64,000 nucleotides of DNA from Podarcis filfolensis (Eukaryota), in the NCBI GenBank assembly GCA_964270895.1, contig OZ185435.1; one strand, given 5' to 3'. The notes beneath the pieces were generated by a model. It saw only the letters and a list, made by a program, of their open reading frames with translations, ran no database searches and was not told the origin of the DNA. Shown piece after piece: positions 1-10,567 of this stretch (positions are counted from its first letter, which is position 1; the number at the start of each line of letters is the position of its first letter). The position numbers and the translations under genes are program-made.

Positions 1-471
1 GAAAAATAGTAAAAACATTTAACTTCTTTTTTCAGTAATCTCTCTAGATAAATTAGAAGCTATCTCAAAGCTATGTAAAGATGTAATCCTGACTCCATTT
101 AAATAAATGGACTTTCACTAAACACAGGAAGCATGGTGTGATGAAAAAGTATGCAAAATTTGTTTGCTGCTTGAGATTATCTCCTGCCTGAAATAACTCT
201 TCCAAGTTGAAGCAGTCTTGAAATGGAAACATCTCCTTGGGTGTCTTCCAAGTACAGGAATTCTAATGGCTTTTAATTCTTCTGGTGTTGGATGAAAGGT
301 ACTTGAACTGTAAATCATAGTAGGTAAATGCCATCAGACTAAACGTAATTATACTTAAAAACCTGATACGATATTGATTCAATTCAACCAAACATAGCAC
401 TTAGTAAGAACTGATGAAAAGAACGATACCTATGTAACATTTGAAAAATATTCAAACCATCATTACAACAG

Positions 472-645
472 CTGTTGCCTCCAGTGATAATGGCAAGCAG
501 GAAGACACCACACAAAAACCACATGCAATGCATCCTGGGTGGGAAAGTGAAGATGAAGATACCACAAACACAACTATGGATAATATCCCACCTATAATTA
601 TTCTTTCAAGTGAAGGGAAGCATGAAAAGGAAACACATCATACAG
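472..645 (+). CDS. CD44: CD44 stem/variable-type exon A (174 nt, phase 1-1)
   Basis: acaacAG|CTGTTGCC...CATACAG|GTacc; open frame AVASSDNGKQEDTTQKPHAMHPGWESEDEDTTNTTMDNIPPIIILSSEGKHEKETHHT; homologous to five neighbouring exons and upstream of unambiguous CD44 TM/tail exons. Confidence 0.8.
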
Positions 646-1275
646 GTACCTCCCAGGAAATAGAACTTTAATAAATTTGCATTCTTTGTATTATTTTTCA
701 AATGTACCACATTGTCACCATACTCCATTTGAAGAGCTATCCCAACTACTCTCATTCTCTCTGCCAGTTGATAATAAAGTTCCATTCATTTGCAACAAAA
801 CAATGGTATTCATAACCCACTTAAAAGTAGAGTCAGTAATTACAGGAGACGACTCTCCATACTTAGCCTTCAAACCCAGGTGTGTGTTTTTTATGAGTCA
901 CTGTTAGAAGGTGGGTGTATAAATGCAGAAAGTACAGAAATAAATTGCCATAACTGCGACTTTCAGGGATGACAGTGACCACTGACTTAGCATCAGTCAG
1001 ATGAATGGAGTAATTTAGTGGTGGAGTAGTAAGGACAGGTAAAATACAAATAAATCTAGGGCTGAAGACCTATTTGGCATTACGCCTCCAAGTTACAAAA
1101 ACAAAACAAAATGTACATGAATAGTCTTGTAGAGATACAAATGTGTTTTTGTTAAACAAATCTGTTTCATTGAAATATTTTGAAGGAAATTCTGCCATCA
1201 ACATGCCCTTTAGAGATGCTGATGGGCTAACGTATGCATTATTCAGAAAGAGTCAGAAGCCTCCCAATACATAAC

Positions 1276-1513
1276 CATAGAATTATAGAGTTGGAGGGGA
1301 CCCCCAAAGGCCATCTGGTCCAAGCCCCTGCAATGCAGGAATCTCAACAAAAGTTTCCACAACAGTTGACCATCTAATCTCTGCTTAAAAACATCCAGTG
1401 AAGGAGAGTCCCTCACCTACTAAGGGAGTCCATTCCACTGTTAGGCTACTCCTATTGTCAGAAGGTTCTTCCTAATGTTTAGCTGGAATCTCCTTTCTTG
1501 TAACTTGAATCCA
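1276..1513 (-). mobile_element. CR1-type LINE 3' fragment
   Basis: catagaattatagagttggaggggaccc...ggccatctggtccaagcccctgcaatgcagg is the reverse complement of the CR1 3' end/(ATTCTRTG)-like tail. Confidence 0.65.
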
Positions 1514-1621
1514 TGTGCAGTAGAAGGCCAGGTAATGTGCCTCTCAGTAAACAATTTCGTAATAGATTACATAAACATTGTAATAAATGAATGAATGAAT
1601 GCTCTAACTATATTGTGACAG

Positions 1622-1786
1622 CTGTGGTCTCTGATGGTGGTAGTGACCATGAAGATTCTACTCAAGAAGCACATCCTGGCCAGAACAATGAACACAGGCA
1701 TCCTTCAAACACGTCAACAGATTATTTTGTACCTGGAATTATTTCTTCAGTTGAATACGTGCATGGAAATGAAACTTCACATATAG
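1622..1786 (+). CDS. CD44: CD44 stem/variable-type exon B (165 nt, phase 1-1)
   Basis: gtgacAG|CTGTGG...CATATAG|GTac; AVVSDGGSDHEDSTQEAHPGQNNEHRHPSNTSTDYFVPGIISSVEYVHGNETSHI. Confidence 0.8.
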   Translation: MWSLMVVVTMKILLKKHILARTMNTGILQTRQQIILYLELFLQLNTCMEMKLHI

Positions 1787-1900
1787 GTACAAGCAAGAAG
1801 AAGAAAATTCAGATATTCTCTTTGTTACGTTCTAGATGAATTAGGCTGCTGTATTGAGCTAGATAACAGGTTGCAATTTTAATCTTACTGAAATCAATTA

Positions 1901-2101
1901 CAGTGGTACCTCGGGTTACGAACTTAATTTGTTCCGGAGGTCTGTTCTTAACCTGAAACCTTTCTTAACCTGAGGTACCACCTTAGCTAATGGAGCCTGC
2001 TGCACTGCTTGTGCGCAATTTCTGTTCTCATCCTGGGGCAAAGTTCTTAACCCGAGGTACTACTTCCAGGTTAGCGGAGTCTGTAACCCGAAGTACCACT
2101 G
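1901..2101 (+). mobile_element. TcMar-Tigger-like MITE copy 1
   Basis: TIRs CAGTGGTACCTCGGGTTAC / GTAACCCGAAGTACCACTG, flanked by TA on both sides (1899-1900, 2102-2103); three more copies in window; strand is arbitrary reference orientation. Confidence 0.85.
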
Positions 2102-2251
2102 TATAGAAATTCATTGACATTAAACAAAACAAGGAAGGTGCTCGTGTCATGATAGGGTACAATGGTCTGTAATTGATATGAGAACTGGCCATGCAATCAT
2201 AATATTTGAACTTGATTCCAGCATCATTGGAATAGCAGTGGTCTATAGTTA

Positions 2252-2608
2252 AGGTGGGACGTGGGTGGCGCTGTGGGTTAAACCACAGAGCCTAGGGCTT
2301 GCCGATCAGAAGGTTGGTAGTTTGAATCCCCGCGATGGGGTGAGCTCCCGTTGCTCGGTCCCTGCTCCTGCCAACCTAGCAGTTCGAAAGCACATCAAAG
2401 TGCAAGTAGATAAATTGGTACCGCTCTGGCGGGAAGGTAAATGGCGTTTCCGTGCGCTGCTCTGGTTCGCCAGAAGTGGTTTAGTCATGCTGGCCACATG
2501 ACCCGGAAGCTGTACGCCGGCTCCCTCGGCCGATAAAGCGAGATGAGCGCTGCAACCCCAGAGTCGGCCACAACTAGACCTAATGGTCAGGGGTCCCTTT
2601 ACCTTTAC
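2252..2608 (+). mobile_element. Sauria SINE, full length
   Basis: tRNA-derived head GGGACGTGGGTGGCGCTGTGGGTTAAACC, body, (ACCTTT)n tail; target-site duplication CTATAGTTA at 2243-2251 and 2609-2617. Confidence 0.9.
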
Positions 2609-3018
2609 CTATAGTTATGGTATAAGCCTTGAACATCCATTTTTCATTCATGCACACAGTAAAGCTTTTAAGTAACAATAAAATACACTGCAAATATCTA
2701 GAGATAACTTGCTACTTAGTAGTATTCCTCTATCAGAAAGTTAGAATAAAAAGAAAACATTTCATGTAACTATAAAGAGGAAGTGTGTATTTTTGTTTTT
2801 TCATTCTGTTGATATATTCCAAATGAATTATATTCCTTTTGTGTCCTGGGTTTGTAAGGAAACTAAATTTGCATTGAGATCCACTAAAATGTGGTAATGG
2901 ATATCCATTAGCAATACTAATTTTAAAAAATTAAATGCGATGCTAAGCAAATCATGTGGGATGTAGTTCTGCAAATGTTACAGAACACTTAACATTAACC
3001 CAACCATCATTATCATAG

Positions 3019-3198
3019 CTGTGGATTCCAGTGATGATATCAAACATGAAGTTGCTACTCGTGATCCAACAGTACATGATATACATCATGAATCAGGTAG
3101 AGAAGATGATTATTCTACAAACAGCACGAAGGATGAAGTACCCATAGAAGTTATTCCTCCAGCTGGAAACAATAACATAGATAATTTCTATCATACAG
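3019..3198 (+). CDS. CD44: CD44 stem/variable-type exon C (180 nt, phase 1-1)
   Basis: atcatAG|CTGTGG...CATACAG|GTag; AVDSSDDIKHEVATRDPTVHDIHHESGREDDYSTNSTKDEVPIEVIPPAGNNNIDNFYHT. Confidence 0.8.
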
Positions 3199-3458
3199 GT
3201 AGTTGTGGCAGATCCATTCTTAATTATGTGGTGATTGGTGATGGTGTGGGGAATCACATTGCTCACAACTGGATTCTTATTTTCAGTCAGTAAATATAGT
3301 TGAACATGTAAGGTGCACAAGAAATGTAATTGCATGTAAATATGAGTAAAGCTGAGAAAATTGCGCAGTGAGTTATTGGGAGGGGAGTGGCTTGCAAAAG
3401 CCATCATTTTGTATTTTAACACCTCCAAACCTAAGTTCATCATTGATTCACCAAACAG

Positions 3459-3611
3459 CTGTCATACACAACGATCATGAAGACTCAACTCAACAACCAT
3501 TACCTCCCATTCATCAGCCAGGCTGGGATGCTGAAGAAATATATCCCACAAATACTTCTAGAGATGGTATACCGATGGGAGTTGATTCAGATAGTGAAAG
3601 CAAACAAACAG
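3459..3611 (+). CDS. CD44: CD44 stem/variable-type exon D (153 nt, phase 1-1)
   Basis: caaacAG|CTGTC...AAACAG|GTat; AVIHNDHEDSTQQPLPPIHQPGWDAEEIYPTNTSRDGIPMGVDSDSESKQT. Confidence 0.8.
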
Positions 3612-4937
3612 GTATTGCGCTGAATAATCTATTCATTTCATCACAATGTATGAAATGAAGCACTGTTTTTGAAACAAAGCATTTGTCGTTCTTTAAATCT
3701 GTACCCCGCCTTTCCACCAAATGGAAATGTTGATTAATGTCTAGATTTTAAGGTTGGAATTCTAACCTAAGAATATTATTTGTTCCTTTTAACATAAGGT
3801 TGCTGTTTTCGGGCAATTTGAGAGGGACTGATTCTTTGGGATCGATGTCTCATGCTCTAGGAAATCCTCTGATTTTAACTTTTGAATGTTAGATCTAGCC
3901 TCTGGGAGTTGAAAGTGCCCTATGGGGATATTTTTAGGCAATGATACATGACAAGGACAAGTGATTTGTTCAAAATAGGGATTAGGGCATAAATTATACT
4001 GAGGCATAGCCTTCTGAAAATTAGAATTAAAAGTTCTCTCACTAGAGGCAAGCTTGCTATTCCTTAATAATAATAAGGAACAACTCCTGTTCTAAGAGTT
4101 GATTTTATGCAAACCCCATTTAAAGGAGATGTTCCTCCCATCAAGTTTATATAGCAGGCTCCAGAAAAAACAGGCCTGGCAATATAGACAATAGCATTCA
4201 TTCCACGACACAAGAACTTGATAGTACCTTACCAGATATTTCTATGCTGATGTTTTGTTTTGTTCTCAAGCTAGTCTGTAGGGCATAATGTCCTTTGGTT
4301 TAAATTTCTGATCATGTGTAGAGCTTGTAGAACATAAACAAACAAGATATACAAATATGGTTCTGAAACTAAGTCTTACATTTTAATTCTTTATATCTCA
4401 TTCATTATGATTATTATTTGCATATGCCAATCACCCAGAGTCAAATAATGATGTTTGCTGTGATGATCATTTAATTATGACATGATTTATAATAAAATTA
4501 GCCCAAGTTAAAACCTGTAGAAGAGTTGAAATGAGTGTGTGAGAAAGGGAGTGGTGAGTAGAGAGCAGAAGGTTGAAGAACGTGGGCTCTCATCCACAAC
4601 TGACAAGTACTTGGCTGTAGCTCATGAATAGTTTTCTCTTCCATCAAAAGTATATAACACAAATGTCATTGTCAAGTTGATGAAATTTTCTGCATGCCTA
4701 ATCAACTGTCAGTGTCAGCTGGTGATGTCAGATGTTGGGTCAGAAAATAAAACCAAGGGGGAAGCCAGATCACTGTCAAAGTCTTTTGGAATTTCTGATT
4801 GTAGCAAATCTGGCATCCCAGCATGTTGTTTGGATAGAAATATTCTGCTGGTAGAGTAAGAAGTCAGTGGATCAGAGTGAAAAGCAGCTAATAGTTTTGC
4901 TATTTTTACAATCTCAATTCATTTACCATTGCCATAG

Positions 4938-5084
4938 ATGTGGCCAAAGAAGATTCAACCCCAGAACCAGTGAGGCAATGGGGTCATGAAGACAAATACA
5001 CGACGAAATCAACAGCAGATGTCTTAGTTCCTGGAATTGTTCCTCGAAGAGGAATAAGTCAAAAAAATAATACTGATCATACAG
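4938..5084 (+). CDS. CD44: CD44 stem/variable-type exon E (147 nt, phase 1-1); not in ORF track
   Basis: gccatAG|ATGTGG...CATACAG|GTat; DVAKEDSTPEPVRQWGHEDKYTTKSTADVLVPGIVPRRGISQKNNTDHT. Confidence 0.78.
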
Positions 5085-6557
5085 GTATTCAGTAGAATGG
5101 TGGTGGGATTCCTTTTAACCCTGTCTATCTTAGGTGAGATAATCTCATGTTGTTAATTTTCGTGTCTATTTTAAAACAGACACAGAAAATTAAATTGCAT
5201 GTAACCTGAACTTATATAAGGTTGAGGAACAGAAACTAAATTGTTACCTTGGCCAGGACCTTATTGGTAAAACGAATGTGTTGAAGTTGCTACTTGGGGA
5301 CTGTCCCATGTGAAGATCACCTCATAAAATAATGTCATAAAATCATTTGTAAGCAGTTGCAGCCTAATGACATTTCCATATCTTTGAACTTCAGTTTTGA
5401 AATTTCCCTGTCAAAATTCCTTGCTTAATATTCTTTAATTGTGGCTAAGGGAGCACATGTGATTGTGATAGCCATGGCCATTTTGATAGCCACCAAGATT
5501 GTGAGAAGTACTTGTCTGTTTGCCAGGCACTGCAGGTTTATACAACATAAATTTGTTGAAGGAGTATTGCATTTTGAGTTGTGATCAAATTGACTGTTTC
5601 CCAACTATTCCTGTTACATATGTTATTTTTTTGCGGGGGGGGGGGGAGTGTATGATATGTACAGGGGAATAATTTTCTAAAACAATTTAGGTCATGATTT
5701 CTCTATTCCGTTCTGCAAATATTTGCATTTATTGTTTCAATTATGTCATTTTGCTATCATGTGAAGCTAATGATCCTTCACAAAATGTATCTATTATACT
5801 GTCTGTTGTTACATCTCCTACTTGAGAGCCTAGTGATGTCTTTAAATACTGTATTTATGTCAGTATTAGTGCCAAGATATAAGATTTTGCAGGATGCTTG
5901 CTTAAAGATGGCAATGTGTTGAAGTTTTTGGCGTACTTTAGAGACTCGTTTCCTTCCTAGTTTCAGTGGCTAGTGTTTCTTTTTAGGTAGACAATTAGAG
6001 CATCTTTTAATATCTGTAGTAAGAACTGATATATTGATTATTCATTTCACTTTGTTGTTCCTGGCATATTCTTGGGCTTTCCAAACTGCTGGTGTGCTTT
6101 ACATTTCTTGAATATTTATCTCTGCAGAGATAAAAATCGGACTGAATTTGAGCCAGTGGGTTTGTTTAAGTTTTGAAAAAGGGAAGGAAATGACAACACC
6201 TTACTTCCCAAGCGTGGTGTGGGTTAATGGGCTTGTTAGCAGGAGCCATGCATGAATTTTATTATTAGACAATATTTCCATGTATATGCACACTCTAATG
6301 TGGCATCTTTTGCCAAATGGTCCTTGGATCCAATGTTACTTTGATCTGAGCTGCTTCTGGCTGTTGATCACTTGAGTCTCTGTCCATTACTACTGGAAGT
6401 TTTCAAGAGCAGATCAGAAACATTGCAACCTTCCCTATTTTGTTCTTTTTAAACTTTCAGTATAGTAGGAATTTTGTAAAACAAAAAAACGGTTTTAATT
6501 CTGCAAATTTCAAGGTTAATTGATAGTTAATAGTTGATTCAACCATCATTACAACAG

Positions 6558-6743
6558 CAGTAGTCTCAAAGGATGGAACCAAAACTGAAGAATCAACACA
6601 AGATCCACAGTTACATGGATTGCGTCCTGAATGGAGCACTGAAGATGAGCCTGTTGTAAATGGCACTCAAGATTATGTATTACCTGGAGTTTTTCCTGAA
6701 ATTGACAGTGGTTCTGACAGACATCCATCATCGCCTACTGCCA
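6558..6743 (+). CDS. CD44: CD44 stem exon F (186 nt, phase 1-1; last variable or first constant stem exon)
   Basis: acaacAG|CAGTAG...ACTGCCA|GTaag; AVVSKDGTKTEESTQDPQLHGLRPEWSTEDEPVVNGTQDYVLPGVFPEIDSGSDRHPSSPTA. Confidence 0.8.
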
Positions 6744-7643
6744 GTAAGAGTTATAAATTCCAGGAACTTCAGCTAACCTTTACTTTTCCATACATCAAAA
6801 TCCTGGGGAAATGTGGTGTGGAAACAAATAGCTATTAGATGGAAATCTTACTGTGATTACATTCTGTTTATTTCATGGCTTCTTGCAAAGATGCATGATC
6901 AAACTCTGATTTTAATGAATGCGTTTGCACTAGTCGAAGGAAGGTGTGTGATCGTTTCTCAACAATCTTTCTGTCACTCCAGTTTCGGGTATTAGTTGAT
7001 TTTTCTCCCTTTTCTCACTTATGGGAACTATTTTCAAATTAGTAACAGATTAATACATATTTCTATAAGTGTCACTACAAACAATTACACATAGCAATAT
7101 TAGCTAACGTCTGCGGCGTTTGCATGCATTTGATAAGTGTATGTGGTGTTATGGAAAGGCAGTTTCACCCTGATTGCTACAAGGATACACTTCATAGAAC
7201 TCAAAATACAGGGCTAAAGAATAAAAAAAAAATACCACTAGCTGGAAATTTAAAAGAAGAAAGCATTTTATCATGGTTTGGAAAACTGATTTTAATTTTC
7301 ATAGAGTAATGGATCCCTCTTTTCCCTTTCCTTAGCATAGCCTGCCAGTATTTTACAAAAGAAGGCTTTTTGAAATGGTTGGCAAACAAGGTGTGATATT
7401 GAGAAACCCAAATGAAAGCTCTGAGGAAACTGTGGTTTATATGGAGCTTAAGCACTGCTGTATCCTTGTACTTTACCATTCCAATGTCAAGGAATAGGGC
7501 CTTGTTATGAAACTCAACACACCTGTGTTTCCTTTGACAATATCATGTATTTTTTTTGTCTGTGAAAACTCAAGGGCTCCAGATTTATATAACACAGCTC
7601 TAATGTTTTGTGAGTAATGCATGTTTGTTTGTTTTTTATCTAG

Positions 7644-7742
7644 GTGTTAACCCAAATGACCCGAAGGGGTCTGGAAGAGGGACACACATTGACCAGACAG
7701 GGGAATCGCCAAAAAGCGAGCCACGAATGGCTATCATACCAG
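7644..7742 (+). CDS. CD44: CD44 membrane-proximal stem exon (99 nt)
   Basis: Strong U-tract ttttatctAG| and CCAG|GTtgg; ...VNPNDPKGSGRGTHIDQTGESPKSEPRMAIIP, joining in frame to D-WLIVV, like human TPQIP-E-WLII. Confidence 0.85.
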
Positions 7743-7842
7743 GTTGGTGTCTTTACTTTTACCATTTTTGTCTATTATAAAGTCCTATTGGTTTGTGATT
7801 GCTCCTCTCACTGCCACCACTAGAAGTGGTGAGCCTCTAGGT

Positions 7843-8045
7843 CAGTGGTTCCCAATCTTTTTAAGGCCATGCCCCACCTCAGCATCTCTAAAATCCTGAT
7901 TCCCCACCCCGGTGACATATAATTCTTATTATTTAAGAAGTGAACTCCTATTCACGTGGAGGAAGCCTAAAAGGCCATTAACTGTTAATAACTCGTTCTC
8001 AAATTGCCCCCGTGTGGGGCGTGCGCCCCACTTTGGGAACCACAG
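7843..8045. mobile_element. hAT-Charlie-like MITE
   Basis: TIRs CAGTGGTTCCCAA / TTGGGAACCACAG; 8-bp TSD CTCTAGGT / CTCTAGAT (7/8), matching the NTCTAGAN target preference of Charlie elements. Confidence 0.8.
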
Positions 8046-8936
8046 CTCTAGATGCTTTGCATGTAGAACTTCTTAGGTTAAATCACTGAGAAATTAAGTT
8101 AAAGGTTCAGTCCAGGCAAGACCGTCACCTTACATTTCAGGATCTTCTGCCAGGCAGACAAGGAAAACACTTGGTTACATAGGCCACTAGATTCATTATA
8201 AAGTGGCTTCATTTTTGTCATGTATTTGCAAGGTCAGTGTAGCAGGAAACAGAAGGAAAAGTCTCAGGAACTTAGTTATCAGTTCTTGGGGAGCCCAGGG
8301 GCAAGTCACTCTCACTGGTCTCCCTCAGTGTCATTGTTGCTAGTTGCCACTGCCAGACAGAGCCCGTGAGGAAGCAAGAGGCAGCAGCTACTACTGTTTC
8401 TTTTCAGCACCATTGTTGTTTGCTAGCTCATCCTATCTGGGTCAGAGATGGGGAGTCCAGGGGCGGGGGCAGGCACCTTTAAAAATAATATTGCAGCACC
8501 ATGCTAGTTCCTTGCAAGTATTTCCTTCATGGAGCCATGTATGTGGATACAGACTTTTGGAGAAATCTTAGCGTAACGAAGGAAGAACCTGGAAACAACC
8601 AGCAGCCATTTTCTTAGTCACAGCAGTGCTGTGTACCAGCTGTTATGATCAGGTTTCTGTATGCTTCCCACTTCTCACAAAAGAGTCTCCATACAGTTAT
8701 TTTTGCCATTTATATGGGCATGCAGGGGAGGAAAGAATATTTGTGAGCCAGACCTGAGAGGAAACCTCACTCTGTTGCTTCATACTTTGAAAGAAAACAA
8801 TAAGCATGGGTCCTTTAAGGAAGTAAAGTGGGGTTATTAATGATACTATGTCAACTACTGTGTCAACTCTCTATCCAGATGACTAGCCAGTAAAAGTTTC
8901 CATGTTTTTCCCCCCCCCTCGAACTTCCACCCACAG

Positions 8937-9015
8937 ATTGGCTTATTGTAGTTGCTTCTCTCTTGGCACTGGCATTGATACTTGGTGTTTGCATTGCTGT
9001 GAACAGTCGAAGGAG
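8937..9015 (+). CDS. CD44: CD44 transmembrane exon (79 nt)
   Basis: ccacAG|ATTGG...AGGAG|GTaag; [25 protein letters not shown], near-identical to human [25 protein letters not shown]. Confidence 0.97.
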
Positions 9016-10359: not shown

Positions 10360-10567
10360 ATGTGGGCAGAAGCAAAAACTTATTATCAACAATGGCAAAG
10401 GAGGCATAAATGAGAAAAACAAGGGTGGTTTGAATGGAGAAGCCAGTAGATCTCGGGAAATGGTTCATTTGGTGCATGATGAGAAGCCAGAAAACCAAAC
10501 AGATGAATTCCAGGCAATTGATGAAACGCAGAACCAACAAGAAGTGGCCTTGAAGAGTGGCGTGTAA
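10360..10567 (+). CDS. CD44: CD44 last coding exon (cytoplasmic tail)
   Basis: cattAG|ATGT; (R)CGQKQKLIINNGKGGINEKNKGGLNGEASRSREMVHLVHDEKPENQTDEFQAIDETQNQQEVALKSGV*, collinear with human CGQKKKLVIN...LNGEASKSQEMVHLV...KIGV. Confidence 0.97.

Follow-up and report, generated by a model that had tools for sequence, protein, structure and literature searches.

A probably ancient array of homologous CD44 cassette exons, spread across sauropsids and met through its last six members in a Podarcis genome

The variable exons of CD44 are a classic example of regulated cassette splicing and figure largely in cancer and the epithelial-mesenchymal transition. In mammals the block, v1-v10, is a tandem series of symmetric cassettes between the constant stem and a membrane-proximal exon; it inserts Ser/Thr-rich glycosylated segments into the stalk of the protein and yields many annotated isoforms. 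Titin PEVK-type exon-repeat arrays are likewise tandem exons of symmetric phase, which encode short disordered modules and whose differential inclusion sets how long an extended segment is. In mucin-type stalks, those of CD43, PSGL-1 and the variable-number tandem repeat (VNTR) of MUC1, the repeats lie within one exon and vary by allele length, and tandem exon duplication with short conserved intronic elements beside each copy is a feature of Dscam1 and of FGFR2 IIIb/IIIc. The subject here is a tandem series of six cassette exons, termed E1 to E6, in the CD44 gene of the lacertid lizard Podarcis filfolensis, at the 5' end of a 64,000-nucleotide stretch (assembly GCA_964270895.1, contig OZ185435.1; one strand, 5' to 3') that was analysed whole and is called the window below. 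Very probably they are the last six of eleven members of an ancient array of homologous CD44 cassette exons, sauropsid-wide in occurrence, that encode disordered stalk modules. Vela et al. and Burguera et al. (PMC2531186, PMC5703972) have the CD44 variable exons absent outside mammals or arisen within them.

As a kind of diversification system the array is not new, and it would work like the mammalian CD44 variable block, with which it shares the gene, the position between constant stem and membrane-proximal exon, the tandem symmetric cassettes, the Ser/Thr-rich character of the inserted stalk segments and the multitude of annotated isoforms. Unlike their mammalian counterparts, the sauropsid cassettes are longer (147-186 nucleotides, nt) and overtly homologous to one another, being a single repeat family of 7-12 copies. 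The parallel to titin PEVK lies in duplicated symmetric exons for disordered modules and in differential inclusion that tunes length; gene, composition and cellular location are different, the CD44 cassettes being extracellular, acidic and, by their motifs, N-glycosylatable. As in mucin-type stalks, a repetitive, disordered and glycosylated stalk would hold a binding domain off the membrane, but each CD44 repeat is its own exon and so variable by splicing. With Dscam1 and FGFR2 the array has in common tandem exon duplication and short conserved intronic elements beside the copies. Its cassettes are not mutually exclusive, however, since the X1 models of Podarcis, Zootoca, Anolis and Gekko hold all their cassettes together, and they lengthen a spacer instead of swapping a binding surface. 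The initial annotation, made from the letters of the window alone, had seen in the six exons an undescribed system. That is apt in so far as no paper on a sauropsid repeat array was found in the literature; the exons themselves are already in RefSeq, which annotates array exons as CD44 isoforms (X1-X19 and similar) in dozens of reptiles and birds. The array is thus in the databases and yet, as far as could be found, without description in papers.

Translation and splice borders place the six exons, all of phase 1-1 and of lengths divisible by three, at exactly the positions and with the lengths (174, 165, 180, 153, 147 and 186 nt) first annotated, and in each the sole open frame is that from the third base of the exon. 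Aligned as protein, E1-E6 give VxSxDxxKHEDSTQxPxxHxxHPGWxxEDxYxTNTTxDxxPPGIIP...HT, in agreement with the consensus put forward at the outset. Pairwise identity is 20-42%. When a hidden Markov model (HMM) of any five of the cassettes is run against the 2216 six-frame pieces of the window, it recovers the sixth with E between 5e-16 and 2e-8, the best non-cassette match having E>0.4. Smith-Waterman scores for 13 of the 15 pairs lie above those of all 300 shuffles; for E4/E6 the score was equalled in 2 of 300, and for E2/E3 it was at chance level. With profile and shuffle scores so far above chance, the likeness of the six is one of homology and not a compositional artefact. As in tandem exon duplication generally, neighbouring exons are homologous with their flanking splice-site sequence included. 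Tandem Repeats Finder, applied to 1-9000, returned trivial microsatellites only, and the array is therefore no tandem repeat at the level of DNA. Scanning all six frames of the 64-kb window, which contains not a single N, with the cassette HMM gave no seventh cassette. The expectation that more would lie upstream is borne out by the P. raffonei X1 protein, where five further copies bring the number to 11 and make those of the window cassettes 6-11.

That E1-E6 are visibly alike, at the identities just given, and that the cassette profile matched no mammalian protein, are points in favour of what the initial annotation proposed, namely an expansion specific to squamates or lacertids, or homogenisation by gene conversion, amounting to a novel system restricted to that lineage. 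Comparison with other families makes this extremely improbable. Compared with 12 other squamates, the Podarcis cassettes give collinear reciprocal best matches, and the orthologues score roughly 1.5-3 times the best paralogue within the window: E5 has 82 bits against its Python orthologue and 30 against its best paralogue, and E4 77 bits against Varanus and 35 against its best paralogue. A maximum-likelihood tree was made by quick search on 59 columns from 109 cassettes of 12 taxa (86 from squamates, and 23 from turtle, alligator and goose), with support given by the Shimodaira-Hasegawa-like approximate likelihood-ratio test (SH-aLRT). Squamate-wide orthogroups were obtained for E2 (support 97, with Rhineura, Hemicordylus, Anolis, Eublepharis and Python), E3 (96, with Rhineura, Pogona, Varanus and Gekko), E4 (99, spanning nine squamates), E5 (99) and E6 (99), and E1 pairs with cassette 6 of Rhineura at 92. 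E5 is the most conserved, at 76-93% identity to Rhineura, Pogona, Python, Varanus and Anolis. No window cassette is sister to another window cassette. Two groupings, both fixed by the hypothesis of the initial annotation and not picked from the tree, were put to the approximately unbiased (AU) test, which rejects E1-E6 as one clade (difference in log-likelihood, delta lnL, 281; p 8e-49) and also all 86 squamate cassettes as one clade (delta lnL 53; p 0.0025).

The exons of the window thus group with their positional orthologues in other sauropsids in preference to their neighbours, which refutes lineage specificity. From the orthogroups and the AU rejections it follows that the paralogues were present, in today's order, before crown squamates diverged. 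The E6 orthogroup is itself nested, at 96, with the terminal cassettes of alligator, soft-shell turtle and goose (Alligator_11, Pelodiscus_08 and Anser_04), so part of the array is older than the split between squamates and archelosaurs. Further against an origin within squamates, the same family is present in 4-12 copies in turtles, alligator and birds, and the copies that appear to be products of recent tandem amplification belong to emu, ostrich, alligator and turtles and in no case to a squamate. The squamate array seems instead to have undergone loss or gain of single cassettes, without homogenisation. No counterpart of E3 was found in the Zootoca models and none of E6 in the geckos compared.

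Given an array of such apparent age, its breadth among living sauropsids is pertinent. On the longest available isoform of each of 20 species (iterated cassette HMM, domain E<=1e-5), 13 squamates have 7-12 cassettes, turtles 8-10, alligator 11 and birds 4-10. When 1.84 billion representative proteins were searched with the six-cassette profile, 42 matches were returned. All the named long ones are sauropsid CD44 (Podarcis raffonei, Gekko, Vipera, Alligator, Pangshura, emu, ostrich, goose and falcon), one further long match is an unnamed Salvator protein, and the long matches have up to 11 repeats each. The short ones stem from open reading frames of a single cassette, called on unprocessed genomic contigs. 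Logan contigs provide exons directly: an alligator-like cassette exon of 168 nt and phase 1-1, agamid-like ones of 180, 186, 180, 171 and 165 nt on one 5.9-kb contig, gecko-like ones of 174 and 183 nt, and bird ones of 180 and 186 nt, all of them divisible by three, with AG/GT borders and related acceptors. The alligator-like and bird contigs argue against the notion, which would have rescued an origin in squamates, that the non-squamate cassettes are artefacts of annotation. Among the protein models, five identical two-cassette units are present in CD44 of emu and ostrich, copies that may be genuine or may be artefacts of assembly or annotation. The alligator model has three two-cassette units that look like recent tandem amplification, that of Chelonia (green turtle) four near-identical cassettes and that of Malaclemys (terrapin) a duplicated four-cassette block.

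The attribution to CD44, and to its stem, was made by the initial annotation and is confirmed: what the window contains of CD44, in a Podarcis-type lacertid, is the 3' half of the gene. In Sceloporus the whole gene spans 111 kb. Exons were searched one by one, full-length comparisons being made with public proteins. The window cassettes are 91.5-100% identical to those of P. raffonei CD44 isoforms and 95-100% to those of P. muralis, and are identical to neither set (E1 is 100% identical to P. raffonei CD44 X1 and E2 98% identical to Podarcis CD44). Downstream are the constant exons for the membrane-proximal stem, the transmembrane segment and the cytoplasmic tail (Table 1). Mismatches between the constant stem exon and P. 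raffonei X1 in the tblastn comparison lie only beyond the donor, and the next two exons encode the single membrane pass and the basic juxtamembrane and cytoplasmic tail that are expected of CD44. Six tandem cassettes followed by that constant stem exon are also the layout of a CD44 variable block. The hyaluronan-binding end of the protein lies upstream of the window; in the P. raffonei X1 orthologue the Xlink domain PF00193 is detected in the N-terminus at E 1.1e-20.

Table 1. Positions of the cassette exons, the constant CD44 exons and the putative splicing elements in the window
Feature	Position	Strand	Description
E1	472..645	+	cassette exon, array position 6/11, 174 nt, phase 1-1, AG/GT flanks
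E2	1622..1786	+	cassette exon, array position 7/11, 165 nt, phase 1-1, AG/GT flanks
E3	3019..3198	+	cassette exon, array position 8/11, 180 nt, phase 1-1, AG/GT flanks
E4	3459..3611	+	cassette exon, array position 9/11, 153 nt, phase 1-1, AG/GT flanks; short C-terminal end
E5	4938..5084	+	cassette exon, array position 10/11, 147 nt, phase 1-1, AG/GT flanks; short N-terminal end
E6	6558..6743	+	terminal cassette exon, array position 11/11, 186 nt, phase 1-1, AG/GT flanks; carries PGVFPEIDSGSD
CD44 constant membrane-proximal stem exon	7644..7742	+	99 nt, phase 1-1; identical to P. raffonei X1 (VNPNDPKG...MAIIP)
CD44 transmembrane exon	8937..9015	+	79 nt; peptide identical to P. raffonei CD44
CD44 cytoplasmic-tail exon	10360..10567	+	TAA stop at 10565-10567; 69/69 residues identical to P. 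raffonei CD44
Weak A/C-rich acceptor element TCAAACCATCATTACAACAG of E1	452..471	+	same element at 2999-3018 (E3) and 6538-6557 (E6)
GGU-rich element	3229..3252	+	31 nt 3' of the E3 donor; second at 5093-5110 after E5; also 1016-1024

The intron between E3 and E4 (3199-3458) has 260 nt, as against 900-1473 nt for the other introns of the array. The E2-E3 intron carries a SINE-like (short interspersed element) insertion at 2260-2600, in which ARAGORN found no tRNA, and a second repeat-like stretch at 1900-2100.

How the cassettes are used was approached through 45 lacertid protein models of at least 656 residues, which are models and not reads. Those of P. raffonei skip, in one isoform or another, array cassettes 3-8 and 11. 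Within the window this concerns E1 (skipped in X8, X17 and X19), E2 (X6, X13 and X19), E3 (X10 and X13) and E6 (X11, and also P. muralis X12 and Zootoca X10), at times in groups, as with E2 plus E3 in X13 and E1 plus E2 in X19. P. muralis repeats the P. raffonei events and so does Zootoca, except for E2, which is present in all its models, and for E3, whose counterpart is missing. Anolis X4 leaves out the orthologue of E4. None of the 45 lacertid models is without E4 or E5, and most models include 9-11 cassettes, as they should if the cassettes were ordinary constitutive exons of a long stalk and the isoforms mere annotation noise. This is unlikely. Skips of exactly one cassette recur in independent annotations of three lacertids and Anolis (E1, E2 and E6 in both P. 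raffonei and P. muralis, E1 and E6 in Zootoca, E3 in the two Podarcis species), the acceptors of the cassettes are weak throughout, in contrast to the strong polypyrimidine tracts of the constant exons, and strict retention of symmetric phase and divisibility by three over about 280 million years (My) is the expectation under cassette use. Regulated use of the cassettes is supported but not proven. As to the claim of the initial annotation that the six are freely combinable in at least 64 ways, phase and length make it arithmetically possible, but 64 is no more than an upper bound for the window. The same two exons that no lacertid model skips are also the truncated ones, E4 being without the C-terminal third of a cassette and E5 without an N-terminal part.

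A candidate for the means of regulation is found at the acceptors. The homology of the repeat unit reaches about 17 nt into the intron, and directly upstream of the cassettes an A/C-rich element (CCATCATTACAACAG and variants) takes the place of a normal polypyrimidine tract. Within the 64 kb the exact 9-mer CCATCATTA is confined to three places, the acceptors of E1, E3 and E6. Pyrimidine fractions of the cassette acceptors are 0.55-0.65 with longest runs of 3-4, as against 0.75-0.85 and runs of 6-13 for the three constant exons. The element also precedes agamid-like, gecko-like and alligator-like cassettes (CATCATCATTGTAACAG; the contigs include L001, at 489-505, and those with the L006 and L005 acceptors), and a looser form, CCATCGTCATGGCAG, precedes the terminal cassette of birds. 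Kept among paralogues and over about 280 My, it would most simply be a splicing control element. In mammals, YB-1 binds A/C-rich enhancers that act on CD44 v4, but this is no more than a lead.

GGU-rich stretches (Table 1) are a more questionable accompaniment. They are complementary to the acceptor element if G-U pairs are included, and the minimum-energy fold of 2995-3260 pairs the one after E3 with the E3 acceptor, at a z of only -1.9. Four of the seven plus-strand matches to TRRTGRTGG in 64 kb lie within the 7.7-kb cassette region. In gecko-like and agamid-like orthologues of E3, no GGU-rich element was apparent from the read-through peptides. The stretches could act by pairing with the acceptor or as an ESRP-type enhancer; either role is unproven. 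General enrichment of ESRP-type enhancers was considered and dismissed, TGGTGG being observed 39 times in the window with 38.7 expected.

What a cassette contributes to the protein is suggested by its composition. No Pfam family matches the cassettes, and the PDB holds nothing for the cassette profile at E<=10 and nothing for the tail exon. AlphaFold2, given an alignment of 126 cassettes, returned a model without secondary structure (mean predicted local distance difference test score, pLDDT, 60.7; predicted template modelling score, pTM, 0.13). None of the 126 has a Cys, 106 have an N-x-S/T sequon, and in 82 it is at one conserved column. Cassettes are 48-61 residues long with the conserved short motifs EDSTQ, PGW, TNTS and PGI; those of the window have 17-23% Ser plus Thr, 19-25% hydrophobic residues, and 7-14 Asp plus Glu as against 1-7 Lys plus Arg apiece. 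As modelled, then, a cassette is a disordered, acidic, N-glycosylatable modular spacer of the stalk. E5 is the exception, being charge-neutral with a basic GIVPRRGI.QKN.TDHT end, and it retains the identity given above across most of the non-gekkotan squamate families compared. In E6, PGVFPEIDSGSD is an acidic Ser-Gly site that could take a glycosaminoglycan.

The explanation proposed is that all cassettes go back to a single exon of about 170 nt, copied together with some 17 nt of its acceptor. Duplication would be ancient, with the paralogues diverged and ordered before crown squamates split, and at least the terminal cassette would antedate the separation of squamates from turtles, crocodilians and birds. 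Later evolution would have been by vertical descent with the occasional loss or gain of a single cassette and no homogenisation. Since every cassette is of phase 1-1 and divisible by three, any subset can be spliced in, and each one included would insert a module into the stalk that separates the hyaluronan-binding Link domain from the membrane. Inclusion would thereby change the length, charge and glycan load of the stalk and add cassette-specific short motifs, the weak A/C-rich acceptors being the likely handle for its regulation. What the analysis shows directly is the structure of the exons, their homology and positional orthology, the identity of the gene, the spread of the family over sauropsids, the lack of any predicted fold and the skipping of cassettes in annotated isoforms; tissue-specific splicing, glycosylation, a functional effect of stalk length and the part played by the acceptor element are all inferred.

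Several points tell against this account of an ancient array of stalk modules in alternative use. The tree has 59 columns only and resolves few of the deep forks, and the AU test of a single squamate clade was built on a quick tree. E1 has its orthogroup at 92 only and with Rhineura alone, and beyond squamates orthology is clear for just the terminal cassette and, more weakly, for the first. E4 and E5, from their invariable presence in lacertid models, may be constitutive. The evidence for skipping comes from RefSeq and Ensembl-type models, some of which are possibly computational, and function as a stalk module is read from composition alone.

A different type of question is how the sauropsid cassettes relate to the mammalian block. 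One array in the ancestor of amniotes, of which mammals kept shortened and more diverged copies, so that cassettes and v-exons are the same thing, is a real possibility that falls somewhat short of an even chance. The gene, the place in the stem and the symmetric phase-1 cassettes are the same, and mammalian v-exons have what we take to be weak echoes of the cassette: an acidic or ST-Q stretch, a Trp and an S/T-rich ...TTG end. CD44 of birds and turtles, moreover, carries a partial cassette, SGNGSDDEDSSE...PGWD. This segment resembles the glycosaminoglycan site of mammalian v3, which a 2008 paper reportedly called mammal-specific. On the other side, no mammalian protein was matched at E<=1e-3 in a library where mammalian CD44 ought to be present, a weak test with its threshold set by the size of the 1.84-billion library, and published accounts regard the v-exons as an innovation of mammals. 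In birds the segment is located upstream of the array (305-345 in protein P0016; 99-140 and 182-225 in P0045; 51-89 and 133-176 in P0008, of ostrich). It is doubled in falcon and ostrich, turtles have related partial matches, and with the iterated cassette HMM those of birds come out as partial cassettes.

A further step is put forward more tentatively still. A cassette of about 55 residues with its A/C-rich acceptor may be the ancestral unit of the whole amniote CD44 variable region, with the mammalian v-exons as its shortened descendants, and the acceptor element, possibly together with the GGU-rich elements, a shared switch that sets stalk length cassette by cassette. If true, the CD44 variable region would be at least 320 My old and no mammalian novelty as published.

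Whatever the relation to mammals, the ancient sauropsid array favoured here means that reptiles and birds carry a CD44 variable block as large as the mammalian one or larger, and one with a clearer origin, a single exon copied many times. Positional orthologues appear to have been kept in squamates for more than 200 My, and turtles, crocodilians and ratites show signs of fresh amplification. Together they may offer a natural series in which to follow the effect of stalk length, charge and glycans on CD44, the cis-elements of cassette choice and the origin of the mammalian block.

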